A program made the position numbers and the translations under genes. Below, in pieces: positions 1 to 58,568 of a DNA stretch of 64,000 nucleotides (the first letter of the stretch is position 1; every line of letters starts with the position of its first letter). The notes under the pieces were generated by a model, which ran no database searches, was not told the origin of the DNA, and saw nothing but the letters and a program-made list of their open reading frames with translations. Source of the DNA: Podarcis filfolensis (lineage: Eukaryota); assembly GCA_964270895.1 (NCBI GenBank), contig OZ185435.1. The stretch is one strand, 5' to 3'.

Positions 1-330
1 AAAACAATACAGTAAAACAGAAAAAAGAAAAACAAAAACATTTAAAAACACATTCAATATTTCCATATCTTTATCTTTCATTTACTTGTTTCATCGACCT
101 CCTCACACCTCCCTTTTTTTTGTATTCTAGTTCAATTAGCTGTTTCAGCAAATCCTTTCCATCTTACTCAATTTTTGTTCCATAATTTATCTTAACCCAA
201 TCTAACCTTAAATTTTCCACTTTGACCCATTAACAATCTATTTTTACTTAATTCTTTATAACCTTTCTGCTAAAGCCATGTAACTTCATTCCAGCATCCT
301 TCTAACATTCCTTAATTTTACATGCTGTAG
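1..330 (-). mobile_element. L1 LINE 3'UTR fragment, cut by the window edge
   Basis: The reverse complement shares ordered blocks (GAATGTTA, ATTTGCTGAA, GAATACAAAA, GGGAGGYGTGAGGAGGTC) with the 3'UTR that follows the L1 ORF2 stop at 38149. Confidence 0.75.
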
Positions 331-2030: not shown

Positions 2031-4101
2031 TGGGGCACTGCTCTCCTTTCTTTACGCTGCTCCTTGAATTGGATGTGAATAGCAGAAGCAGCTGATCGAA
2101 ACCACCTCCACAGTTTTAGCTACTCGAGTGCCAAATTGAACTCTGGCAGTCATTAAACTCTGTGGCAGACAAACCCAGAAGGACAAGAACACCCTGAGGA
2201 GAATCCAGAAACTTTGCAAAAGCAATCAGCAGCAGCAAGGCAGCTTAAAAATTATGTGCAGATCAGAGAATCTGGAAATAAGATATATCTGCAAAGTTCT
2301 GCAAGCTGGTGGGCCCATCTCAGGATGGATAGTGCTTTTGATTGTGAATTTACAGGGCTCATATAATATTCTTTTTACTATGGCGAAGGAAGGTGAAAGC
2401 ATGTTTTATAGCTAGCATATGATGACTTGGATGCCTGGAAGCTTTCCCAGGAGTGATTCAGTATGTTTAATTGCAGTGCAAGTCAAAAGGAGACAGTGTG
2501 GTTTGTGGATGAAAGTAGCCCATACATTGGGGAATGAATCTTAAGCCACATGGAGTGTTGAATCATGTCAATGCTATATTTCATGCAAGTAAAATAAGAT
2601 AATTCATGCACTTTATGAGGAAATGGTTATGATAATAGGGGCAACAACAAAAGGGTATGATTTGGCATCAGTTGAGGACGATCCAAAATAATTTAAAGGA
2701 ATGTAACCACAAAGGAGAACAGCAAACTCCCCCTGCTATCAGAGTTCAGCCATATCTTATAATTTAGAAAATTCTGCAAAAATTACACACAGTAGTAGAG
2801 CAGGGGGAGGAATGTTTGAATGGGAGAAAAGCCCCAAATGTTACCAAATCTTTTTTCTCTCCAGAGGGGTAGCCATGTTATTTTTGTGTGGTTTAGTTTG
2901 CTCATTACGATTGAAACATTCTCAGCTGGAGTTCCTGCCTCTTGCAACTTTTGTGATGCAGTCTCTTGGCACTAGTTGTCTGCTTTAGAGATCAGGATCC
3001 AAACAATTAGCAACACATTCTTTATGCTTGATGTGTTGCTGATGCATTTGAATCCTTGTAGGTTTTGAGGTCTCTGGAGGAGGGGTGCAGTTCAGACAAG
3101 CTGTCCTCCTTCACTGCTGAACTCTTGATTATTTCCGGGTCAGATGCCTTTTAGATTCTTCGTGTGGATTGCTCCCTTTTGCTCAGAAACAGGTTGGAAA
3201 CTGGAAGTGATACTGAAGTTTCATCTTGGTTGCACTTGTACAGTAGACCTTGGGAGGATTGTGTGGTACGTCGCGCAATAAGGCTGCAATCCCATGCACT
3301 CTTATTTAGTAGCAAGCCACATTCAACACAGTGGGGCTAACCTCTGAGTAAATGTGTGTAGTCTACAACTGCAAGAGTGATAATGGAATGATAGTTAGAA
3401 CTATATCCCCATGTGTTCCCATTTCAGTTTCTATATTAGTATTTTCCCCATTTATCAGCATTTTATAAGCTTAGCCTTATTTTGTTTGACCTATAAATTT
3501 ATTGTTTAGTATAACTTATAATTTATCATTGAATTTCAGAACCTTATAACTAAGAGGTTATCCACCTTCATTAATAAGCATTCCGTTTCTAATGCAGATT
3601 GAACACAATTTTCTGCAATGTATAATTCACTTAAATAATATGTACTGAGTTAATATTCTGATTCGAGGAGAGAGGGAAGCTTTTGACAGGACAAATTCGG
3701 CCTTCCAGGGCAGGAACCTCTCCCTACCCTAAGACACATTTTGGTTCTGTATTCCAAACTTATTAGTCAATTGTAGCTAGTTATTATGTTTTATAGCCTT
3801 GAGTTTTTCTCTTTCCAAAAGATGCTTAGGAGCTCTGTTTTAATATCTGTTAAATGTTCCAAATACATTGTAAGAGGACAGATGGGAAAATATATCCAGC
3901 TAGATTTCTGTTTCTCTCTCTCTCTCTCATTCTCATAAGCTTCCCAAAGAAGCAATTTCTTAGTTCCAGCAAATACAAAGGCCAACTTGTACAGACTGAC
4001 CAGGCTTTTTACAAGTCTTTCTCTTTCCCTCAGCATCTCTCTCTTTATGGCTACTGCATTTTGATACGTATAACCGTGTGTGTGTTTTCTGACTCATGAC
4101 G

Positions 4102-4475
4102 AGGGATGGGGAGAAATTTGTGTTGTTTCACATTTTCATACAAATTCACGCTTTCTGAAACAATACGCAAACTGAAATGCAGCTATCCTTCAAAATTCAT
4201 GTTCCTTCGAATTTTCTTAATGCACTTCTCCAACCAAAGATTGTGTACAAAAATGTGGCTTGGGGGGGGGGAGGTGCGCATAAAAAACAGCACACAAAAA
4301 TGCATTTTGTTAGGGAAGATGGCTTTCAAAACTGAATATAGCAGGAGAAACACATGCTGAAATACTGATACATTTTCATTGAGACTTTTGAAAACCTGGT
4401 GTGGAAATATGTACTGGACTGAACCATGAGATTGGAAAAACGAGAGACTGAAATGGACACATTTATTCCTCCCTA
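4102..4475. mobile_element. Possible old non-autonomous DNA transposon
   Basis: Begins AGGGATGGGGAGAA and ends TTCCTCCCTA (degenerate inverted ends). AT-rich interior, no TSD resolved. Confidence 0.35.
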
Positions 4476-5956
4476 CCCGTGACACTTCTGGTTAGCGGCA
4501 GAGATTTATGGATTCCCCAGGCATGTTTTAAAAGAAAGTGAGCCAGCATTGGGGTCTGCTGGCCTGCTTTTACTTGAATTCCATTCCAAGTGCCTCTTAA
4601 CAAGGATTAGGCGTGGCATGCTTCTAGCCATTACTGCCACATGGGTTAACTTGCAGAAATGTGGGGTCAAGATTTAGGTCCCTCAGATGTAATAAGGACT
4701 GACATGAACAGCAGGAAGTGGCGTCCTGTTGTTTGTTGCTAGTTGTAGCGGGGCGGCTTCCACTATGTGCATTAGATTTTGAAGATATTCTTTGTGCTTG
4801 GGAGTTCCAATAGCTTAGCAGTCTTTCTTCTTCTTCTGATGCTTTATGCACGTGTCTTGGGGGTCATCAGCCTTATTCCCTCTAGGGGTTTATGGAGTCA
4901 GTTTGACACCACCCCCATCCTGCAGGCATCTCTTCTCCACCTCCCCTCTCCCATCCTCCAATTGCTTTTGCCTAACCCCCTTTATAAAAAGTCAGGAGTT
5001 GTTTTTCCTGCTGGGATCTGTCTTTTGCCCATCCTTGTAATAACGCAACAGAACACCACTAACATAATGGCAAACAGTTCAGGGGGAGGGCAGGGGAACT
5101 TCCCCTTGCTTGCATCAAAATTTAAAAAACAGTAGTGGGCAAAAAATAAACCACTTAACCACATATTGCCCAAGTGATGTGAAGCCAGAGCAGATGTGAG
5201 CAAGACTGATAGATACTGGATTTTTCCAGGATGAACACAATGACTTATCACCCCTTTCACATGATACTGTATGTGCAAGAACAGGCTGTATACCTAGTTA
5301 AGGGTACAAGGAGAGTTTCACACCTTCTGGAACCCCTTCTTTTCACCTAATAGATAATTTGCAGGCCCGGGGTTTAGTTTGGAGATAGATGATACCAGTA
5401 TAGATCATGAAAAATTCAAACATCAGTTGTTTAGGATTTATACATGCAAATGTGTGCTACTTTCAGTAGAGCACACCTTCAGAGCACTGCACACCTGGCT
5501 GTGCAGTCCTCTGAAAGCAACAGAGTCCAGAGATGATGAGAATCCACATATGCTGTCTGTCTGCAGTGTGTTGGTTTCGGAAGGATGCACCTCCAAATAC
5601 AGTTTCCATTGAAAGCAATGCAGTCCAGAGTTTTTGCTTGGATGATTGGTACAGTACTGGGAAACACATTTGTATGTGTGCATCCCTGATCAATAGTCCT
5701 GATTCTAAGGCAAGGTGACGGTGGAGCAGTTTTGGACTTTGAGAATGTGGTTCTAAGGTACATCCTGCATTTTGAAGTCATTTTGAAAGCTGTAAGTGAA
5801 GCTTAAAGGATCAGCTGTCTGCTTGCATACTTTCTAAGAACTCTGTGGACCTGACAGGGAAGAATACATAGGTGATATCCCTGGATCTTGGGCTGCAGCT
5901 TCTGCCTAGCAGGCACACCTGTTGCTTGCCAGCTCTACTGAGCTACCAGGCAAAAT

Positions 5957-6006
5957 CAGAAATCATAGGATCATAAGAGTTGGAAGGAACCCTGATGATA
6001 TGCAGG
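5957..6006 (-). mobile_element. CR1 LINE extreme 3' end
   Basis: ATCATAGGATCATAAGAGTTGGAAGGAACCC resembles the reverse complement of the CR1 3' terminus. Confidence 0.55.
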
Positions 6007-7524
6007 AATATGCAGTTGTCCCTTATGAACCAGTTCTTAACATGTGGGTCACAACTCATCCATCTAGATTGAAATATACTTGCCCTTTCTGTTCCCCCTG
6101 CTCCTCCATTGCTGGTTAACGAATGACTCTGGATATATTTTCTCCTCTCCTGTGTAGTTGGGATTCATTAGCTGGGAAGAGTCTTCACATTCTACTTGAA
6201 CAGTATGCGCTATATATTGTTGTTGATAAAAAAGGCAGTTCTTAGATCCCATCTGGCACTGCCATGTGGAATGAAATCATGCAACTGTCACATGCTTTTT
6301 TAAAATGGCTATTGGCTGAGTAGTCACTGTCGATGTTGAAACCTCTCTCCTTAATTAAGGCATCATCTTAAAACATGTGCATGTGCTGGCTAAGTGCTAC
6401 TGTATTTCTGAATGTGCTTATCTAGCATGTTTTTGTTCCTTTTTTCAGATCTGCTAAGTTACCCTTTCCCCCCTGTATTAACCTCTGATTTCTGAAACCT
6501 TTACTTGAAATTTGCGGTTTAAAATAACTTTGTGCTGGATGTGCATGTTCAAATGCTAATTTAATCCTGTTTAGTAAAGAAATAGATGCAAGCAGTAGCA
6601 GCAGAGCTGTTTTCCCCAATACAGGAATGTGGTATTGCACTGCTGGCATTAGATTGAAGCTAGCATGAACATAGCGGGAAGGATTAAATCTTTGTTTTTT
6701 TAATTGATGAGAAAAGCACTAAAGCGCCATCCTGGTAGCACAGGAATCGCTATTCCATTCATGTCCAAAGCCTATAAAAAGGGAAAGCAACTGTTCAGCA
6801 TCTGAATGAATTTGGCAGCAGCACTAAAAAGACATGAGCTGTGTATATACAAAGCCCCTCCAAGTAGTGAATTCCTGTCGCATGCACCAACTTTTTTTAA
6901 CTCTGAAAACCCAAAAGACCATTTTGGCAGCTGAACTGATAATCCAACTATTATTTTCAGTATACTGCAAAGTATTGTTTGGATGCATCTAGGATGGTTG
7001 GAGTGGCAAAGGAGACTTCCTCGAGTATAGAAATCCTTGTGACTCATATACTTTCCTTTCCAAGGGAAATGAAAAAAATCAAACTTCCTGGTCAGCAAAG
7101 TTGTGAAAGAAATTCACAATTTGCACAAAGATGATGGGTGCAAAATAAATAGATCTCTGTTTCTGCTTATAATGACCCCTTGTTTGCTCATCCCTTTTGG
7201 ATTATTGAAATCCAGTCATTTCAGTAAGGCAGGCTGCTTAGCATATTAGTTGACTCTTGCTACTGGCTTGTCAAAAAGCAGGGAGATTTCAGCAGAATCC
7301 TTAACTTTTTCTGCTTGGCTCCCACTTACTCCCTTCCCCAGACATTCTCGCCTCCAGTCCTGGCCCAGGTTATAACAGCTGTACATTTATCATGTAAGCT
7401 GTTCTTATGTGTAAATTTATGGATTCGATGAACCTGCTGCATTTATGCTGGGCATTCAAGTTAGGGGGGAAAGGCAGAATGTGCGGGAAATGATGAGGCA
7501 CAGAGGCTTAACCTGTTACACAGA

Positions 7525-7718
7525 GACATCGGAAGTTGCCTTATACCAAATCAAAACGTTGGCCCATCTAGCTTGCTCCTGCCTGCGCTTAATTGGGAGC
7601 AGCTCTTTAGGGTCTCAAAAGAGTCTTTTCTAGTCCTGCCTAGTTAATGGAGATCCAGGATTGAAACTGGGACCTGCATGCAAGGAAGGTGCTCTGCCAC
7701 TAAGCTACACTCCTTCCC
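7525..7718 (-). mobile_element. tRNA-derived SINE (Squam3-like), diverged
   Basis: Reverse-complement head with A/B-box remnants at about 7650-7718 and tail GGAAGTTGCCTTATACC...CCCATCTAG at about 7525-7575; homologous to 12857-13011. Confidence 0.6.
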
Positions 7719-9814
7719 CAACTGTTGATTTCCTTTTGTGCTCTTAAGCACATATAGCACCTTTGGATGGTGGTGCTGAGGCAAAGGGTGGTGTGGCCCA
7801 CTGCTGTGCAACACTCTGAGGCCTGTGATGCATTCACACCCTCTCTCTTTTCCCCTCTCCCCACCACCTCCATCCCTGGTGCTTTCCCCCCACAAAGACA
7901 ATTTTTCCTGCTAATCCCAACAATTGATCTCTTACTAGGATGTTTCCCCATGTAGTGCAGAATGCACCGTGTTGGGAAAAGTAAATGAGCTGTTTCCATG
8001 GCAGTTTACACTGCAGAGAGCAGCATCCAGTGATATATGTTCTGTAATTTATTTATATTTTTTGGCGGGGTGGGAGAAGAGGAATGACAGGGGCAATGTG
8101 ACTGAATATCCCATTTGGCTTGGCCCATAATAGGGCAGGGCTTGCTCTCCCTAGGTTTAAAACAACGAATGTGTGAGATTGGTATTATAAAGTGGTTTAA
8201 CAGCTTTCTCTTGGTAGGGTCAAGGGGTCCCACGCTGCTCCAGCCACTCCCTATGCCTTGGAGCCTTGGGTCTTTGACAGGCCCCTGTGTGTTTCTGCAT
8301 TGAATGGTTCCACCTTCCACAGCTGACAGCTCTGCTACTGCTTGTTCATGTGGATATGAGAGAGGTCTTCCACAGGACTCCTGACATGGGCGTCTGCAAT
8401 ATTTTTTTCTGGTGTGGGCAAGGGGGACCCAAAAATTAAAGGGGGGGCAGTCTGGTTTCTCACACAGAAAGGAGAATAGTGTTTGTACATTTTTGCCCCA
8501 TATATCTGACTCTTCAAATGCTAGGCACATATCCTTTTTAAAAAAATGAATGCTGGGAATAAACAGATTATGGTTTACTTGGGGTGTGTGAGAGATGTGC
8601 AGACAAGAATCTATGATGTTCCTTGTTCTCCCAGTGAGCCTCCAGTCTAAATTTTGGTTCTTCAGGAAGCGGCAATAACACACACTTAAAGAGTTTATAA
8701 AGGCATCCACTTCTTTCCCCACTTTTGTTTCTTTTTTTAGGGGCCTGAGTGGGTGGTTAGGGCAACGAGTGCAGTGGCGCTTTAAAGACTCATTGATTTA
8801 AAGTGCCATGAGCTTGAAGTGGAACAGCAAGCTTATATTCACATGGTTGACATACCTGCCCTGTTAAGTCAAGTTAACATGTTGAAGGCTGAGTTGGAAT
8901 GTAAAAACACACCTCTGCATAGTTTTGTGTTTTCCTGTTTAAGACATAAGCGGCTTATGGTTAGTGTATAGCACTTTGTTGTGAAGTTGTCTTAATGAAA
9001 GCTTCCATGGCCTTCATGAAAATTCAGTACTTTTAGTCATCTGACCAAGAAGGAAAAAATGGTCAGAACACTCACAGGTTATTTGAAGCTTTTTGCCTGC
9101 AGAAAAGGAGGGACTGAATAATTTTGCTAAGGAAAGCCTTCATCCTTAACATGTGGAAAGGTCACAAAACTCGAGAGTCTAGAAGGGGAAGGGTTGGACG
9201 CCTGCTTTTTGCCAACTGCTAAATTAACTCCAGTCATTTCTTAGCCCCTGCTGAGAGCATGAAAAACAAGGGTGTGTGTGAAGACAGGAAGCAAACTGGA
9301 AGGATGGTGGAAAGACTATAATGACTTCATGATCTAGGTATCCTTAATGTGAACTGACAGTGTTTTTAATTATTGTTGTTGTTTATATAGTGCCTCTTTT
9401 TTCTCCCTTTGTTTTTTAAAATTTCTTTTTTGTTTCCCTTCTTTGTTAAATTTGCAAATAAATAATAATAGTGAAGACAATTGTAGTGGCTGAAGTCTGT
9501 GGTTTTTGTAAAAAAACGAAACAACACAGACTAAATGGAAAATGCTGACTCAAAATAAATGGCATTAGGAATAACTGGAAAAAGACGATGTTCTCAGTAA
9601 TAACTGCATCTGTGAATGCTGAATGATTTATATGAGAAGGGTTGGCAAGACTGAGGGTGCTGTACAGTCTAAAGAAGTGTAATGTTTTGGAAGAGCTGTG
9701 TTTTTCCAAATACTGCCTCCCAATGAGGCATGTTTGTGTATCTGTGTGACTTGTTGCATAAGGCATCATCTGCACCATCCATTTAAAGCCCTGCCACATC
9801 ACTTGCAATGCTAA

Positions 9815-9980
9815 TGGCTTCCTCCAAAGAATCCTGGGAACTGTAGTTTCTTAAGGGTGCTGAGAGTTGCCAGGAGACCCTTGTTCACCTCACAGAGTTA
9901 AGAGTTGTTCCAGAGTGCTCTGAGAAAGAGGGACTGATTGTTAAATCACTCTGGGAATTGTAGCTTTGTGAGGGGAATGA
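9815..9980. repeat. Short dispersed repeat with two CTGGGAAYTGTAG motifs
   Basis: GAATCCTGGGAACTGTAGTTT...CTCTGGGAATTGTAGCTTTGTGAGGGGAAT; a related motif occurs near 56575-56620. Confidence 0.5.
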
Positions 9981-11149
9981 ACCCAATGCTTCATTATGCA
10001 TAATGGTGAGCTTATTGAAATATGTTTGGGAATTGCCCTGTTGCAGTTTCTGTGGGCAAGGCACATCTTTTCATATACACCCAGGGTGGGGTGCCCATAT
10101 AACCCCAGTGCTACAACATGTATGCTGCTTTCTTAGGTGAAGAAATGTGTTATTGGGGGCATTCCAGTCTCCTTGCACTACAGTCTGGAAAATGGAACCA
10201 CCAGCTCTTGGATCTATACAGCCACTGTTGGCATTGCATTTCTTTTTTTCCCCTCCCCCTGCCCCCTTTTGGCTTGCAGCTCTCACTTGGGGTGAAAAAG
10301 GATCCCTACGAGGTTGCATTAAGTTCTACTGCACAACATAGGCCTAAGTGTACAACTGGAGAGCACACATACATTGGTTGGGTTGGATTTCTTTTTATAT
10401 GTGATCCTGCTGAGCAGGTGAGCAGCACGTTGCCAGAATACAGTGAGCAGAATAGCTAGCAGAAAGTGACCCAATAGTGGATGCTTTTACATCAACTCCC
10501 CCCCATCCTCTCATTCTTGATTTATTATATTTATCATAATTTTCCCCAGTTACAGTAGTGTGTGTGGGCAGAAGATAGTGGAACAGGGAGGACAAGTTGG
10601 CTTAACTTTTTAATTATTTGTCCTGAGGCTCAGTTGTTTCTGTGATGGTTTTTTGCTCAGGCATCCTCCCTCTTGTTTCAAAGCAAAAAGCAGAAATTGT
10701 GGGAGTTGGGAAGAGTGATTCTCTGTTTTCTTCAGAAGCTTATAGATTGTGCACAGTCTTGATTTCACAATATACAAGCAGCTCTGCAGATTCATGTCTT
10801 GCTAGAATCTTTTTTTTATTCTCTTGAGTCTGGTAGTGCTCTAGCTTTTCCCATCTTCACAGTTGGTTAATCTCTTTTAGCCCTAGTAGTCTGCCATCCC
10901 AGGAAAAACATCTGGGAGAGCGTCTGCTACCTTGTGCAAAATTCACTGTGTGGCAGTGTGTGATGCGTGCTTATTTGTGCTATTTTGGAATGTAGGCAGA
11001 AGCTAATGCTCCTTTCTTGAGTCATGGAAATAACTTTGTTGGAAGCTGTTTAACTTGTTTGCCTAAGAAGGAACTGCTTCTCGTTATACCCTGTTTCTAA
11101 GCTCAACCTTCTAGATTTTCCAAAGTTCAAAGCTTTTTCCTACATTCCT

Positions 11150-11815
11150 CTAAGGTTTGTACTTACTTATTTTTAAAAAATTGAATCCCACCAAACAAAG
11201 CCTGCAAGGCAGCATGCAACATTATGTAGAAATAACAGTAAAACTACTGTAAAATGCCCCAAGTATCAACTTTATAAATTGGAGTCTTCTAGACAAAAAC
11301 AACAGCAAACAATATAAAAATTAGCTTTAGTGAGTCGGAATCCCAAGCTACCTAACCATTTTAGGTCTCAGATCCCAAACGTTTCACTAACAATGTAAGA
11401 AGCAGTGCAGAGCTGCCACAGCAGGCTTTAGGGGGGAGAGAGTTCCACAGTAGGGGCTGCTACAGAAAAGGTCCCGCTGCTTGTAACTACCACCTAACAT
11501 TTGCTAACAATGGGACTTGGAGCAATCCCACCTCCTCAAATGATGTTTGTGCATTCTAGGGGATAGTGTCTTCTGTGGGAGAAAGCATTCTGTAAATCAG
11601 GGATAGCCAATGTGATGCCCTCCAGATGTTTCAACCACAGCATCTCCTAGCATCCCTGACTATTGGCCATGCTGAATGGGATTGGGGGAAGTTGTGGTCC
11701 AAAACATGTTGGATACTCCTTGCCCTAAATTAACCTGGACCAAGATGTATGTCTTTATTTAGGGCTTTAAAGGTTAACACCAGCACTTTGAATTGTGCTC
11801 AGGGATAATTTGAGG
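11150..11815 (-). mobile_element. Degraded L2 LINE 3' region, interrupted by a MITE
   Basis: GAGAGTTCCACAGTAGGGGCTGCTACAGAAAAGG and AGGGCTTTAAAGGTTAACACCAGCACTTTGAATTG resemble antisense L2 blocks (compare 17115-17160). Confidence 0.45.
11598..11726. mobile_element. Palindromic hAT-like MITE
   Basis: CAGGGATAGCCAATGTGATGCCCTCCAGATGTT...CATCCCTGACTATTGGCCATGCTG...GTTGTGGTCCAAAACAT; same layout as the 20034 and 58437 copies. Confidence 0.6.
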
Positions 11816-12856
11816 ACCACTTCATTTCTTCTCAACAGTAGTGTTTTGTTCTCCCACCATGTAGTGGTGAGCACAACTGAAGTTTCTTATCCCTCTCTTT
11901 AGAACATAAGAAGAACCCTGCTAGATCAGACCAAAGGCCAGCATCCTGTTCGCCCAGTGGCCAACCATTTATAAGGGTACAATCCAGCTCCATTAAAATA
12001 AGTAGAAGTCCTGCTGCTGACTTTAGTGGGAGTCCCATTAAGATTTAAGGTGCAAGAGACAGAAGTTAGCTTGTTTGCCTTATTTCTGTATAAGTCATCT
12101 CTCTCCATGCTGGAAACTTAATTGGACTGCATTAGAGCTCCCATCCAGCGCTATAGGGCAGTCATGCATTTATTTATTTTTAGGAGTTTCCATTTGGGAA
12201 CTATAAAATGCTACTCAGCCAGTTTAATCTAATTGTAATGGTTCAACTTGGGAGTTTTTTTCTTTCCTTTTTTCAAAAACCCAGACAAACGCGATGAGGA
12301 CTGGCATGTGTCCTTGTAAACAAATTGCAGGAAAGCTGCAGCGTGGAGGTCTGTGTCTTAAACTGTGCCAAATCTCTTAATTTGTATTGTGCTCTTGACA
12401 CTCCTGCTGAAAAGGCAGAGGAGTGGAGAAAAACGGAAAGTGAGGGGGAGGGAAGAGATGAAGGGAGATGGTCTCTTTGTTGTGCCTTGTTCACTTAGCA
12501 AGGATTCCTGCATGAAATGGGGGCAAAGGAGGCCAGGGCAGCATCCTGCCAAGCCCCTGGACAACAGCAAGACAGCAGTGTTCTCCCAGTCTTTGCTTAT
12601 TTAGCTGCAATGGGATGCATCTCAGAATTTGAGTCTGAGTCAGTCCCATATAGCCATCTCCCTTGTTGAGAAAGGGAATAGCTTTGGTGAAACCAGCGTT
12701 GTTTCTTGGACTGCTGCAAGTTCCCGACTCATGAATCTGTTGATTTAGCTGGCCCGTGTGTCTTGTTTTCATCTCCTGGGAGTTGGGAAGGTAATTTAAT
12801 GTACACGGGAGGCAAACTGCAGCTCCTTTTACCATAACAAAACCAATAATATTTAA

Positions 12857-13011
12857 GGAAAGAGCTGTGGCTCAGTGGCAGAGCATTCGCTCTGCACACA
12901 GAAAGTCCCAAGTTCAATCCCTGGCACCTCCAGGTAGAACAGGAGAGAGCCCTTTCTGAAACCCTGGGTAGCTGCTGCCAGTCAGTGTAGACAGTCCTGA
13001 GCTAGATGGAC
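12857..13011 (+). mobile_element. tRNA-derived SINE (Squam3-like)
   Basis: Pol III A box TGGCTCAGTGG (12868-12878) and B box GTTCAATCC (12912-12920), then the body GCTGCTGCCAGTCAGTGTAGAC...GAGCTAGATGGAC. Confidence 0.8.
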
Positions 13012-16000
13012 ATGATGGTGTTCTCATCTCCTGTAGCAGTAATTTAGCAGCAGGACACCGAGCTTGAAGGAGTGATACCGTTATCTCTGTTTTGTCTAAT
13101 ATCAGGACAGTTTACATATTACAGCTGTAAGTTATGGTGGTGGCTATGAACTATCCCACAGAGAGGCTGTTACCTTGCTGTGAGCTGTTCATTTGCAGTT
13201 GCTCAGCAAAGGCATTGGTCAGTTTTCATACTGCAAAAATAAGGGTCTGCTATCGCTTGCTGAAAAACACCCAGTCTTCACAAAGGTCCATTTCATTCCG
13301 TATTCATCTCACAGTAATGGCCATCCATAGAAAGACGTAAATAAGTGTCTTTGGTCACAACTGTTTAACCTGCAGCTGTACTCTGTCCTACAACACATGC
13401 AAGTTGTAGTCTGTGCTACAAGTGCCTAGTCCTAAAATAAATTCACATCCTGCTGACCAGTTATTTTGTGAGCAGGGCTCAGTAGTGTGGAAAGGCTAAG
13501 GTGTAGACTCTCCCCCCCCCCCCAACTTCCCAGCTGTTTTGGTTCTTTTCCAAAGGTACAGATGTGTGTATCACTAGCTACTACATTTGGCCCTGTTGAA
13601 GTGTGAGCATAATTCCGATTTGAATACAAAACCCCTCATCCTGCTTGGGGCTGTGCACACAGAAGCCTGCATCCATGTGTACACAGGCCAGTGGTGGTGC
13701 AGGGCAGCTGTGAATCACTTGCCTGCTCAGACTGCACTCTTGCCTGCCACTGATTTTACAAGCATAGAGATCTAGGGGAGAGAGCTTCTGAGAATATTGC
13801 ATGGAAACAATCAGGTTGTCAGTCTGCTGTCTTTTAAGAGCACTCTAATAAAATTGGCTATTGATTTTAAACATGGAATTAGGTTTACTGCTTTCAGTGG
13901 AAGAGCAGGAAACATCTGACATCTCATTTCAGAGTTGGACTAGAGGAAGCTCCTTGTGGCAAAGCTGGAAGTGAAATATTTCTAGCAAACGGCATTAATA
14001 AATTGGATGCAAAAGCAAAACAAGAATGGTGGGTTTATCAAGTGCACAAAATATATTTATTTAACAGCAACAGGTGCTAGGGTACAGATGTGTGTTTCTT
14101 GATACTACCCCCACTCCCAAAAGAGAGATGCTTTAAACGTTTGATACTGGTACCTTACTATCATATAGCTGACATTTTGTTTCAAGAGCAACATAACTCA
14201 TTCACCAATTGAAACATGCTGCAATCATTCAATGTCAGGCGTAGCATTTTTAAAAACTGAAGTACTGTAGGCAGAATGCCCTGTTTCAGACGTGTTAGTC
14301 ACCCAGTCTCTGTAAGTTGCTTTGACGCCTCTGACTTGTTTTTAGAATGCACTTTCCCTTCTTGGGCTGAGAATATATTCCAATTCACCAGGAAGACTTG
14401 TGCCTGCAGAAGGGTGCAGTGCTTTTCCAGCATTTATTTTTAGAGTCTGAATGCTTCTCCAAGACGGCCTTTTACATATTGTAAAGGTTCCTGGCCTCTT
14501 CCTCCCTCCCTGTCTCTTAATTTGGAGTGTGTGTGTATAAGAAATATCAAACAGACTGCCACAGGCTTGGGAATTCTTGATGCATTTGTGTCTTGAAAGC
14601 TGGTTTAATCTTGGTAATGATTGCAGCTCAATTTCTTTCAAGGTAATTCCAGCTGAGCAAACTTTTTAAGTGCCCAAAGATTTTCCTTGCAATAATGGAA
14701 ACAACAAAAATTAACCAGTGCCTCTCTTTCTGAATAGAATTCTCCACAGCACAAAACCTCAGTTTGCGTCCAAGTCAAAATACATGCACTTCTCCCATCT
14801 GGCAGGAGGAGCATTCACTGCTACTTTTGAGAGCTACCTGACTTTGTTGTCATTTTTATCTAGAAACAGACAAAACCATCAAATACACTTTCAGAAAAGT
14901 TGGGTGGTGCCATACTTAATAACATACCACAGTAGCTATCTGCTACCATAGAGGAGGGACAGTCCCATTTGATGATACATTTTTTTAAAATGAACAAAAC
15001 ACCACTTGGTTTAGTATCTTGGCGGTCAACCTTGCCATCAGTGCCACCTTCAGGCGGACAAAGTGGGGCTTGCTGACAGCAAAATAACTTCTAACTTGCA
15101 AGCTTGCAAGTCTTTCTTTGTAGCTGCTTCCTTACCTGCCCCACACCTGATGTCAGGTGAGTATGGGGGACATGGGCTTGTGGACTGTCTTTAACCGTGT
15201 GGTTAGAACTGGGAATTTCACAGCTGAACCAGAATCTATATTCCTGGATGTTTTAAAAGTTGTTGTCCGCGTAATAAGCCATCTTTAGCACTCCAGCGCT
15301 TTTGCTACAATTTATTATTTATGTGTTATGTGCCGCTCTGGAAGTGATGCTGGCTTTGGAGTGTCAAGCAGCATTCACAGGATTCCCAGAAACTGGTGGG
15401 GCTGTATCCACAACCTCTTAGGTTGAAATGGCCTGCAGCCCTTAGGTTACTGCTAATGTACCTCTTCCATCCTGCTTCACATTATGCAGAACTTGTCCAA
15501 AGCCCTTACAGTTCCAAGGAGACATGTACAAGGAAAGCAGGAGTGAGTGTTGGGTTCAGCCACGAAACTTTCAATGCAGGTCACTTTTCCTCAGCCTAAT
15601 CTACTCCATAGAGGCAGCTGCGAGGTTCACATGAGATAGCAATACATTAAAACAAAGACTGTTCACCTTTGGAATAGAGTGGAGGGGGGGGATTAAATAA
15701 ATCAAGGCATTATGTTATGTATCAGTTTTCTTTCCAATGTAACTTCATTGACTCTAGTACGAAGGTTACTGCAGATTCGACACACCCCAACCCCCACCAA
15801 AATGTCTAAGGAGGGGAGCCAGGGACCTCTACTTTTCAAATATGTTGAACATCCCAAAGTGGCTGGCCTGGAGTTGTTTGGTTGGCTCAGATACGCCTGC
15901 TTTTTAAGATCCTCTTATTTCCAAGTATCCTAAATAGCAAGTCGCGACCTCTGTGAATCGTTTTTATCATAAGCAGCTAAGAAATGATTCCTCCAGGGAG

Positions 16001-16947
16001 AGATTGCTGCAAAATATTGTCAACAGCAGTGCTGCAAGGTCTGTAGTAGCCTTTTAATGTTTGTTGGTGTTGGCGCAAAGTAGAATCTGTTATTTCAAAA
16101 CAAGGAAAGAGACTCTGAGATGAAAATATTTAATAAGATTAAATAATTGTTAGTGCAAAACAGACGAGGATGAAAAAAAGAGGGTGGGGTTTAACTAAGA
16201 ACATATTCCTTCAGCTGCATCAGGAAATAATCAAGAGCCAAAAAGAGAGTGTCTGAACTTTTGCTCCACTTGAAACAATAACTAGGAACTTGCTTCTATT
16301 TTAATTTTCTTGCTTAGCCCCTTGGTTTGTATGCTGTACAGCTTACGCTTGCCAGGTGGGATCTACAAATGAGATGCCACCCATTTTAAAAGTGTCCATT
16401 ATTTCAGAACATATCAAATGTACCGCCTTGTTACTTTTTACGTTTGAGTCCAGCAGTCCTTGTGTAGCTATTCTCATGCCAATTAATTTTAGCCTTTGTT
16501 GAGTTCTGGCGTTGAGTGTGTTGGGGTTGAGCCCGAGAGTGGAATTCCATGTAGTGCTAAGTGGGGTATGAGGTTCACCTCCACAATGGGACTTTCTCTC
16601 CCCCTCCTACTCCCCGTGTGACCCCTAAACTTGCTCTGTTTCCCCCCCACCCCCACCCTCCAAAGCAGATTTAGAGGCCAAGGGGTGGGCTAGTCCTGTT
16701 GTACGAGTGGACCACATTCTGCACATGCAACCATTAGCCCAGAGAGACTTTGATAGACCTTGCGGGAACTTGTCATCTCCAGAGCAGTGGTCGAGGATAA
16801 AATGGACCATCCTTGGATACCCTTGAAGGGAAGAGGGAAGGGATACATGTGTTACAAATAAGATGTCTGGCCAGCTTGATGATTTGGGGCTTTGCTACAT
16901 TCCTATGTAGAGGATGGCAAGGCTTGTTTTGTCGGCATCAGAAGTAT

Positions 16948-37379: not shown

Positions 37380-37936
37380 CTGAAAGAAATTGTTATAAAT
37401 ATAAAATAGGTTCTACCATTATAACCAAACATTAATACATTGTCAATAAAATAAGGAAAGTCCACAAAGAATCACCAAAAAGAGAAACCATAAGCACCAA
37501 AGATCATATGGATTTCGTTTCTTCACATGATGCTTACTTCATCCCCTAAGTATGCTTGTGTTCTTTGCATTTAGGTTGAAGAGCAACAAGCAGTGATAGC
37601 TTATTTATTTCCTTGGAAGAATCATGTATTTGTGTGATCTCTGTTGCACTAGTGGGAATCCTTGTGTTGGGTTCCACTAGCCCAACTATTTGGTTGAATA
37701 TGGCACAAATGATCAGCTATGCTATTGAGTTCTGAGAAGGGTATCCTTTGCAACAATGCTGACAAGACAGATCAATGTTCTTATCACTTTGTGCCCTTCT
37801 TCCATCCATATCCCTCTACCTCACCTTCCACTACAGACAATTATGCATGAGGGAAAAACCCACCCCAACATGGTTCCAGGAGTACTACTAGCTGGCAGGA
37901 TTGCATCATCTTTGACAGCCGCCCGCTTCCCCAGCA

Positions 37937-37979
37937 ACTAGATGACCCTCGTGGTCCCTTTCTGACTCTTCTAACACTC
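37937..37979 (+). mobile_element. CR1 LINE extreme 3' end
   Basis: ACTAGATGACCCTCGTGGTCCCTTTCTGACTCT resembles the CR1 terminal hairpin region. Confidence 0.55.
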
Positions 37980-38001
37980 TTGCCATGTTTGTTTGCTTGT
38001 T

Positions 38002-38945
38002 TAAAAGAGGCTTTCCCTTTTTCAAGTATTTTAACTTTATACCATAACATATTATACATCAATATTTTTAACCATTTATCAATACCTTTTTTACATAATC
38101 TTACTAACTTTTGTCACTAATTACCACTTATTACCAATCCAGGCATTTTTAACATTCATTAATTTTGTAGTATTTCTGAAGATAGTCTTTAAATTTCTTC
38201 CAGTCCTCTTCCACCAACTCTTCTCCCAGGTCTCGGATTCTGCCAGTCATTTCCGCTAATTCCATATAGTCCATCAGCTTCATCTGCCACTCTTCCAGGG
38301 TGGGTAACTCTTGTGTCTTCCAATACTTTGCGATAAGAATTCTTGCTGCTGTAGTTGCATACATAAAGAAAGTTCTGTCCTTCTTTGGCACCAATTGGCC
38401 GACCATGCCTAAGAGAAAGGCCTCTGGCTTCTTAAGAAATGTATATTTAAATATTTTTTTCATTTCGTTATAAATCATCTCCCAGAAAGCCTTAATCTTT
38501 GGGCATGTCCACCAAAGGTGAAAGAATGTTCCTTCATTTTCTTTACACTTCCAACATTTATTGTCGGGCAAATGATAGATTTTTGCAAGCTTGACTGGTG
38601 TCATGTACCACCTGTATATCATTTTCATAATATTCTCTCTTAGGGTAAGAATTTGCTGAATTAAATTTTTATATGGGAATACAAAAGTGGGGAGGCGTGA
38701 GGAGGTCAAGAACATAAGTATATGAATTTGAGATTATTGGGAATAATGGATTTGCTTTTATTTTTGTGTTTTTTGTTTAATTTAACTTTTTTTTAATTAA
38801 TTGTGATTCTTTCTTTTGTATCTCTGTGTGTTTTGTTTTTTCTGTAATGTATGGCTTTTTATTTTGAGAATTTCTATCCTTCCTTTTTGTAAAATCTTAA
38901 TAAAAATTTATTTAAAAAAAATAAAAAAAATAAAAGAGGCTTTCC
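38002..38945. mobile_element. 5'-inverted (twin-primed) L1 insertion with TSD, in UMPS intron 1
   Basis: TSD (T)AAAAGAGGCTTTCC at 38002-38016 and 38931-38945. Inverted ORF2 C-terminus (CWKC-x8-H-x4-C knuckle) plus proximal UTR on the minus strand at about 38646-38017. Distal UTR, AATAAA (38899) and A-tail on the plus strand at about 38642-38930. Confidence 0.92.
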
Positions 38946-39259
38946 AAATCTCCAGGCATGGCTGGCCTCCAACTCCCCTCAGTCCCAGTCAACATGGTTA
39001 GGGCGGGAGGTGATGACAGCTGTTGTCCATTAGCATCGAGAGCACTAAATTAGAAGAGGCATTAAAGCGTTTTTGTCCTGCTGAAAAGGCTCACAGAGAA
39101 GCTGACATAAATTCGATAGCAGCAAGCTGCCCCCCCCCCCGCTTGCACCCTTGTAAACCCTTTTCCCCCAAGAGGAGGGGGGGAAACAAGGAGAGGAGAG
39201 GCAAACCGGCAAACCCCAGTCAGGAGCAGCGGTGCTTATAATGACCACCAGCTGCAATA

Positions 39260-39700
39260 GAAACGTGAGGCGCTGGTCTCTCGGCCTCCCTCCTCCAACT
39301 GCCTCGGGCCCGCCTTCCTCCCTCACGCGCGACCCGTGCCCGCCCGCGCGCCCGTGGGGCTCACCTTGTTGAGCAGGGCCGGGTGCGACACGATGACACG
39401 CAGGTCGACATAGGCCGGGGAGACGAGGCCGCTCTTGAGCACGAACTCGCCGAAGCGCACCGCCTGCACGCCGTATAGCTCCGAGGCTAACGCTTCCATC
39501 CTTCGAGGCTCTCGCGCGCACGTACGGAGAACAGCTCGCGCCGGGTCAGTCGCCGAGTAATGACGCAAGGGAAGGCGGGGTGGGGCGGGGCAACCCTCCT
39601 CCGTCGCTAGGAAACCGGGCGATTCCTTACGGGGCGCCACGTGCACATGCGCGCTAGGGCTGACTACTCTCGTTACCCAAGGGTACCTACTACTGTATTA
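39260..39700 (-). promoter_or_regulatory. UMPS: UMPS CpG-island promoter and 5' region
   Basis: Abrupt CpG-dense stretch over exon 1; GC boxes at 39573-39591, TGACGCAA at 39561, E-box CACGTG at 39638, NRF1-like GCACATGCGC at 39643. Confidence 0.85.
39365..39499 (-). CDS. UMPS: UMP synthase exon 1 ([45 protein letters not shown]), 135 nt
   Basis: ATG in strong Kozak context (AGGATGG); F.LKSG..SP.Y.DLR motif; GTGAG donor. The six exons sum to 1431 nt = 476 aa plus stop. Confidence 0.93.
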
Positions 39701-39992
39701 GTGGCACCTGGCTTTCTCTTGCATCCTGGCCGGCGCTATTTGCTTGGAGAGAAGGGGGTGCAATTGGTACCGGAGGAGGAGTGAAGGTTGTATATGCTCC
39801 GCTCCTAGGAGCGGAGAAGGCAGGGAGGCTTGTTTTGCAGTTGCTTGTGCTACTACTACACGGGTATTCTGGTGCACGTGTGTCCGGGTGAACGCGTGTG
39901 GACATCACCTAGCGGACACTGGTGTGGAGGCACAAAGCGGCGAGCCCACCCCCCACCCCGGTCTCCAGAATAGAGCTGCCCAGGAGAGGAGA

Positions 39993-40131
39993 GATGGGCG
40001 TAGACAGGATTTATGTTGGGGGGCAGGACTTTTGTTGGGGGGGGGGTAGGACCGACGTGATTGGTCAGTTTGTTATTTCTGTTGTTTTACTTGATCTAGG
40101 GAGGCAGCTGCCCCCCTTAGCTACGCCCATG
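39993..40131. mobile_element. hAT-like MITE upstream of UMPS
   Basis: Ends ATGGGCGTAG...CTACGCCCATG; no matching TSD. Related heads lie at 40474 (CATGGTCGTAGCCAGG) and 8385. Confidence 0.65.
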
Positions 40132-41099
40132 CCTTGGAGCGTTTGAGGGGGAAAGCGGTGAGTACATTTAATTTAGGGGAGTTCGAGAAGAGGGGGCGCC
40201 GCCTGTGCGTCCTAAAGCCGAATAAAAACTCCATCGCCAAAGGAAAAATCCCTCGGAGTGCAGCACTAGAATGGATGGAGGGACGACGACGACGACGACA
40301 CTGGAAGCAACATCTGCGTCGGAAGAATACTGAATAGGGTCCATTTTGAAAGAGAAGCTTCGGGCTTCTCAGGGATGGATAACTTTTTAAAGAAAGGACT
40401 ACAGGTTTTCCCGACTACAGGTTTTCCCGATTGAGATGTGTTTCGAACTTTTGTGCAAATAAGGACCTGGGAGCATGGTCGTAGCCAGGAATTATTGGGG
40501 AAGGGGGCAGAACCGAGTTATCTGTGACGCAATTGGTTAGTTCAGTTCAGTTATTTTTATTTATTTATTTTCAGCCGCACCCCCCTGGGAGCCAATAATC
40601 ACCTGCAGGGTCGTATAGCACGTTCGGGTTTACTCGCTTCGTAAGAACTCGGGCATTGCTCACATTAAGAACGTCCTCTGTTGTGGACGTTTAATCTTTA
40701 GTCTCTGCTAAAAGTTCGGGGTCACACACCACCACCTTTAGCAGTGAGTAACCTGATCAACATAGACCAGTGGAAATTGAACAGTTTTGGTGTGCGTCCT
40801 GTAGCAAAATTTGTATTTTTTTTAAAAGGTAGTGTTAGCAATGTCAAAATCGAATTTGCCCGAACACAGTAGAGCTAATCAATTCTCATTATTTCAAGGT
40901 TCATATTACAGTCTTAAAGCACATATGTCAGAAATCATAAATCCTATTTTTAAGGGGGGGAAAGTAGTATAGATAACAGACTTTCATTAAGCACATACAC
41001 CCCTTTCAGTTGTATCTAATGGCTTTACATGGCAGGCAGCTCTCACAATTTCTTCTCCTGTTTTCTTCCCCCATATAAGTCAAAATAAAAGCTTGTCTT

Positions 41100-58436: not shown

Positions 58437-58568
58437 CAGGGATGGGGCACCAGTGGTTCTTCAACTACAGACTACAGCTTCCATCATCCCTGACCATTAG
58501 CCATGCTGGCTGGAGCTGATGGGAGTTGGGGGTCTAACAGTGGGAGGACCACGGGTTCCCCCACCTTG
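58437..58568. mobile_element. Palindromic hAT-like MITE, near full length
   Basis: CAGGGATGGGGCACC...CCATCATCCCTGACCATTAGCCATGCTGGCTGG...GGGTTCCCCCACCTTG; no TSD match. Confidence 0.7.

Follow-up and report, generated by a model that had tools for sequence, protein, structure and literature searches.

A young 5'-inverted L1 copy in UMPS intron 1 of a lizard, very probably formed by twin priming

Results

Structure of the Insertion and Its Target Site

We analysed a stretch of 64,000 nucleotides, here called the window, in which intron 1 of UMPS contains 914 nt of L1 sequence lying between perfect 15-nt direct repeats. UMPS is encoded on the minus strand, and within intron 1 the distance from the exon 1 donor to the right repeat is 419 nt. 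The insertion consists of an inverted half, made up of the C-terminal part of ORF2 with the proximal 3'UTR, and a sense half, made up of the distal 3'UTR with an A-rich tail. The features of the locus are as follows:

38002..38016, no strand: left target-site duplication, TAAAAGAGGCTTTCC; exact repeat, present as a single copy in the empty-site contigs
38017..38148, minus strand: inverted half, part 1, with 132 nt of proximal L1 3'UTR; aligns to 101-258 of the in-window relative
38149..38642, minus strand: inverted half, part 2, ORF2p C-terminal domain with the stop codon at 38149-38151; from the translation and the match to human ORF2p
38642..38643, no strand: inversion joint; the A at 38642 fits both halves, and there are no filler letters
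38643..38913, plus strand: sense half, distal L1 3'UTR; aligns to 260-419 of the in-window relative and is colinear with a Podarcis lilfordi copy (L001:16231-16620)
38914..38930, plus strand: A-rich tail, A8TA8; read from the sequence, abutting the right repeat
38931..38945, no strand: right target-site duplication; exact repeat, with a contig of run X19 extending 41 letters to the left of 38940
39365..39499, minus strand: coding part of UMPS exon 1, with the ATG at 39499-39497 and the GT donor at 39364-39363; from a six-frame motif search and the sequence

The repeat TAAAAGAGGCTTTCC is exact at 38002-38016 and 38931-38945, the two copies being 929 nt apart and its only occurrences, and the pair sits precisely at both ends of the retroelement. 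An exact 15-mer repeat of any kind was obtained in 6 of 2000 shuffles of the surrounding 1.15 kb (about 0.3%). The inverted 3'UTR adjoins the left repeat directly, with zero extra letters at 38017, and filler letters are likewise missing from every other junction. The sense half is T-rich and non-coding and carries AATAAA at 38899-38904. The T at 38931 can be assigned either to the tail or to the repeat, so that the duplication measures 14 or 15 nt. The left copy of the repeat is preceded by TT, and under the 14-nt reading the bottom-strand cut falls at TTTT|AAA, which is the L1 endonuclease consensus as cited in Kojima 2010 (PMC2912911); it lies one base off if the T at 38931 is counted in the repeat. 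Two features by which insertions of the L1 clade are recognized are therefore present, namely a target-site duplication within about 10-20 nt at a TTTT/AA bottom-strand site, and a poly(A) signal followed by an A-rich tail that adjoins the 3' duplication. A preliminary description of this DNA had reported a direct repeat bracketing the element, a plus-strand 3'UTR with AATAAA and an A-tail on the right (38643-38930 in our coordinates) and a TT|AAAA nick context, all of which we recovered; it had also placed the insertion 420 bp from the UMPS exon 1 donor, and our search confirmed that exon, at a distance shorter by one nucleotide.

The ORF2 half has the same orientation as UMPS, and the half with the tail has the opposite one. 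A minus-strand AATAAA at 38557-38562, inside the inverted ORF2 piece, has the same direction as UMPS and is therefore a candidate cryptic poly(A) signal now situated in intron 1. The UMPS promoter and exon 1 are covered by a CpG island (39250-40250; G+C 0.60-0.68; 13-31 CpG per 250 nt vs. 0-5 in the intron), and a run of ten C is found near 39134-39143. Contig depth is raised in all four sequencing runs used below at 37598-37729, 37928-37993 and 38946-39049, reaching 2 to 11 times the single-copy level, and the flanks of the insertion have one weak match (75%) to 58470-58532 of the window; the L1 apparently inserted into, or next to, a moderately repetitive element of greater age.

Identity of the Element

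The minus strand is open for 165 codons from 38646 to 38152, ending in KINEC and followed by the stop at 38149-38151. The first of these codons straddles the inversion joint, which leaves 164 codons from L1, and the 132 nt after the stop (38017-38148) are non-coding, in agreement with the uninterrupted 164-aa ORF2 C-terminus and about 130 nt of UTR described earlier. The translation contains a Cys/His motif, CX2CX8HX4C. The Pfam match to zf-RVT was weak (E 0.006, below the cut-off) and, Pfam being sub-threshold, L1 identity was settled through the solved structures of human ORF2p: the piece matches residues 1100-1224 of human L1 ORF2p (E 1.5e-9) with the Cys/His motif aligned, at only about 30% identity across the C-terminal domain, and no other family matched in the same comparison with solved structures. 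Because of the match to the ORF2p C-terminal domain, the Cys/His motif and the lack of matches to another family in that comparison, the element is, judged by its predicted protein, an L1-clade LINE, truncated near residue 1100 of ORF2p (human numbering). The copy has neither an endonuclease nor a reverse-transcriptase domain and has been inert since the moment of insertion; no further ORF2 pieces were found in the window by tblastn. The longest mechanically called open reading frame (188 aa, 38149-38715, minus strand) starts in the distal UTR, read in antisense, crosses the inversion joint and continues into ORF2; it is not a gene but a fortuitous read-through that the inversion made.

Breakpoints of the Two Halves on Un-Inverted Relatives

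Twin priming is textbook knowledge for mammalian L1. Under this mechanism the 3'-most base of the inverted half directly precedes the first base of the sense half on the source RNA, and the block ending ...CTTGAAAAAG is predicted to be contiguous with the block starting GGTAAGAATTTGCTG on the source element. We made the comparison copy by copy, with un-inverted relatives that are 80-91% alike. The closest of them, a contig of organism B (run X2, record 24), matches the minus strand of the window from 38166 down to 38016 and then the plus strand from 38645 onward, with 3 letters at this joint (38016/38645) that fit either side; it is an un-inverted family copy, about 91% alike, which reads ...CTTGAAAAAGGGTAAG... 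with exactly three G. The in-window relative (1-320) aligns with the inverted UTR at its positions 101-258 (80.0% identity) and with the sense half at 260-419 (79.6%), both scores lying above those of all 200 shuffles.

For alignment scoring, the two 3' pieces were joined by script in un-inverted order. This join aligns through the breakpoint with the in-window relative and with the Podarcis lilfordi copy, whereas the wrong-order and as-is arrangements do not:

In-window relative: un-inverted join 193; shuffles 73 +/- 9, maximum 102; wrong-order or as-is arrangements 93-124
Podarcis lilfordi copy (L001:16231-16620): un-inverted join 141; shuffles 74 +/- 9, maximum 106; wrong-order or as-is arrangements 61-84

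Between the two halves there is no long inverted repeat, short A/T-rich matches being all that was found, which indicates that they are different, adjacent parts of L1 and not a snap-back duplicate. The preliminary description had proposed that the halves rejoin at one point and occur in the same order in the L1 copy at the start of the window, and the adjacency of positions 258 and 260 bears this out. It had also asked whether the halves might belong to different families or map far apart on the element; the near-equal identities to one and the same in-window relative answer the former, and the adjacent positions on un-inverted relatives the latter, both in favour of a common source.

The relative at window positions 1-320 (minus strand) is the tail of an older L1 from a related family, with a 3'UTR about 80% alike; its sequence sets in a few codons ahead of the ORF2 stop (near 320), and its 3' end is cut off by the start of the window. 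By blastn, the only other copy of the halves within the window was a distant one at 1-160. A protein word search returned relatives of 55-84% identity only, the named ones being from Podarcis lilfordi. A three-way MAFFT alignment proved misleading, as it stacked the halves on each other, and pairwise local alignments were used instead. A minus-strand L1 tail at Podarcis lilfordi L001 was uninformative as a reference, its UTR being shorter and diverged. In the same Podarcis lilfordi region (OX395127.1, L001), a spliced gene model at 3001-16244 (P0009, 'hypothetical predicted protein') has as its last exon an L1 ORF2 C-terminus that is 84% identical to the copy in the UMPS intron; this gene model is likely an annotation artefact. 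A second L1 tail lies near it on the other strand (L001 13103-13860).

Microhomology at the Junctions

At the left edge, L1 sequence can be recognized without ambiguity from 38017 onward, a base complementary to the first G of a GGG; the CC at 38015-38016 is also found in the right repeat and is therefore assigned to the target. This CC can pair with the second and third G of the GGG in the L1 RNA, and the 2-nt CC/GG primer homology noted in the preliminary description is thus real. With one mismatch allowed, pairing with GGUAAG is possible for five of the first six bases of the primer (...CTTTCC). The sense half starts at the GGG (38643-38645), so that 1-3 nt of L1 are present at both breakpoints.

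At the inner joint, other copies of the family agree with the window as far as 38642 and proceed from there into different ORF2 sequence, as the loose ends of contigs show (38, 9 and 12 contigs in three runs). Since they diverge right after 38642, only the A at 38642 is common to both halves, and the microhomology at this joint amounts to 1 nt, which chance gives easily. Of the AGGGT at 38642-38646, earlier considered part of either half, the A keeps this double reading and the remaining four letters lose it.

Empty Site, Age and Variation between Animals

Contigs of four public runs were aligned to 37400-39350: X1 and X19, from different studies, are both labelled organism A, X2 is labelled organism B and X13 organism D. 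In three of the runs a contig passes from the left flank straight into the right one:

X1, organism A, record 4: 38010 to 38940, at record positions 434 to 435
X2, organism B, record 23: 38010 to 38940, at record positions 1006 to 1007
X13, organism D, record 9: 38010 to 38940, at record positions 259 to 260

The skip is exactly 929 nt in each of them and equals the repeat period, which means that the empty allele holds one copy of the repeat and nothing else. The flanks of these contigs diverge from the window by about 1.5% (X1), about 2% (X2) and 3-5% (X13). The insertion is accordingly missing from a further sample with the same organism label, as well as from two related organisms. Because an empty site with one repeat copy is found in X1, X2 and X13, the insertion is a single event, young and still variable between animals. 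It postdates the split of the window haplotype from the X1 haplotype, and both the perfect repeat and the open frame fit this timing. The recent age claimed in the preliminary description is thus supported by three other samples, and the orthologous empty allele that it had proposed to look for, with a single repeat copy, exists in all of them.

In X19, the stretch 37400-38044 is matched by a contig with 0 differences, the last 28 nt of which lie inside the element, and a second contig, also with 0 differences, starts 41 letters left of 38940. Both edge contigs are at flank depth (about 90) and the left one is unbranched at 38016, and the X19 animal is for these reasons probably homozygous for the insertion. 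Given the 0 differences, X19 is probably the source animal of the window, so its edges do not count as independent support. Pieces of the 3'UTR are far commoner in contigs of organism A than of organism B and nearly absent in organism D (these being depths, not copy numbers), which suggests a young, lineage-restricted L1 subfamily.

Discussion

Twin Priming and Its Alternatives

The sequences directly give a single 929-nt indel with one duplication and with two edges that point in opposite directions: the sense 3' segment carries the tail, and the inverted 5' segment meets the 5' duplication by its 3'-most L1 position. Ostertag and Kazazian, in 2001, reportedly put forward twin priming as the mechanism behind 5'-inverted L1 copies, and we consider it very probable that one L1 retrotransposition event produced the UMPS-intron insertion in this way, as a 5'-truncated and 5'-inverted copy. 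The event is ordinary in kind. Its steps we infer from the product. The L1 endonuclease would have nicked the bottom strand at TTTT|AAA, and the freed T-rich end would have primed on the poly(A) tail, the first cDNA copying the last ~288 nt of the RNA to yield the sense half (38643-38930). The top strand would have been cut 14-15 nt downstream, and its 3' end (...GCTTTCC) may have annealed at the GG inside the same RNA, from where a second cDNA would have run 626 nt toward the 5' end of the RNA, into the ORF2 C-terminal domain, giving the inverted half (38017-38642). The cDNA ends would then have been joined at a 1-nt overlap, and filling-in of the staggered cuts would have left the 15-nt duplication. 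Twin priming in a lizard L1 lineage, as the preliminary description had it, is supported by the family identity of the element, the adjacency of the breakpoints, the colinear alignment and the empty site.

An ordinary 5'-truncated L1 in the plus direction, of which the left 626 nt were inverted later by breakage and repair or by recombination, would have led to an identical final arrangement, but one of the two breaks would need to have coincided exactly with the junction of repeat and L1, so that the left repeat stayed whole. Moreover, there are no inverted repeats at 38017 and 38642 to drive recombination, and the CC/GG overlap at the left edge is a prediction of internal priming; a later inversion of the DNA therefore appears highly unlikely. 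We regard as even less likely an assembly artefact, in which reads of other L1 copies were wrongly joined into the inner part, the true insert being structured otherwise. In each of the four runs the ORF2 part is extremely repetitive, the short-read contigs break about 28 nt inside the element, and the inner joint (38642/38643) is known from the assembly alone, no contig crossing 38642 among the matches listed. However, the unique edges are already oppositely directed in a separate contig build, that of X19, where the left repeat leads into antisense 3'UTR (37400-38044) and the right repeat is preceded by the tail, and a random mis-join would not yield a left-edge breakpoint and a start of the sense half that are adjacent on relatives.

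The least likely of the explanations considered is that two separate L1 insertions, one minus and one plus, hit the same spot, or, as a variant, that the second priming took place on a different L1 RNA. L1 is young and active in this genome, as judged by contig depths, which would make a second insertion easier to envisage, but only one pair of repeats exists, and the filled and empty alleles differ in length by 929 nt exactly. Next to 38017 the minus-strand half lacks a separate tail, the T5 there being internal L1 sequence; both halves are equally identical to the in-window relative; and breakpoints on an element of ~6 kb that agree within 1-3 nt would be expected by chance in about 1 of 1000 cases, by our estimate.

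Comparison with Other L1 Systems

The UMPS-intron copy resembles the 5'-inverted L1 copies of human and chimpanzee (Kojima 2010, PMC2912911) in having one duplication of ~15 nt at a TTTT/AA target, a sense, poly(A)-tailed 3' segment, an inverted 5' segment, adjacent breakpoints on the source, a 2-nt microhomology at the 5' junction and no filler letters. In human 5'-inverted L1, duplications peak at 14-16 nt, the 5' junction shows a microhomology of 2-5 nt in ~70% of the copies, and extra letters occur in 3.9% (PMC2912911). Unlike the human and chimpanzee copies, the present one belongs to a native lizard L1 lineage in a lacertid-like lizard host, and the event is confined to the final 0.9 kb of the L1.

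Yamaguchi et al. (2014, PMC4245944) assayed LINE insertions in human HeLa and chicken DT40 cells, and found 5' inversions accompanied by duplications of 10-20 nt with a peak at ~15, a range into which the 15-nt duplication of the lizard copy fits. In these assays 5' inversion occurred only with human L1 in human cells, a single Nimb-2_DR insertion in DT40 being the exception, and not with L1 in chicken cells, from which the authors concluded that it depends on both host and LINE (PMC4245944). The lizard copy differs from the assayed ones in that a native L1 was inverted in the germ line of a sauropsid and, since no L1 inversion was obtained in chicken cells, it is mildly informative on host dependence. 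In Anolis carolinensis, many young L1 insertions are truncated and polymorphic and they are seldom fixed (Ruggiero et al. 2017, PMC5389967), similar to the insertion described here, which is also young, truncated and variable between animals but comes from another lizard family; the nearest named relatives of the host are lacertid (Podarcis lilfordi), which makes the comparison with the Anolis literature indirect. The truncated Anolis copies were called 5'-truncated only, the twin-priming paper being cited just for truncation (PMC5389967). Among open-access papers that join twin priming with lizard, Anolis or reptile, none reported a twin-primed lizard L1 copy; two of them cite Ostertag and Kazazian in the reference list alone, and one such paper applies twin priming to snRNA/L1 chimeras and deals with Anolis in another context.

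The insertion provides a clean natural example from outside mammals, in which duplication, empty site, adjacent breakpoints and primer microhomology can be seen together. Twin priming might, as we tentatively suggest, be a regular outcome of L1 retrotransposition in lacertid lizards, perhaps at a rate similar to the ~30% of human- and chimpanzee-specific insertions, one lizard case giving no rate in itself. If this were true, 5' inversion would be a property of the L1-clade machinery in amniotes generally and not of mammalian host cells, and the host dependence inferred from the chicken DT40 assays would have to be qualified, the UMPS-intron copy being one clean case. With its 929-nt difference, the locus can serve as a presence/absence marker for comparing closely related lizards. 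Repeat annotation can be misled by such inverted L1 copies, which may be called as two elements.
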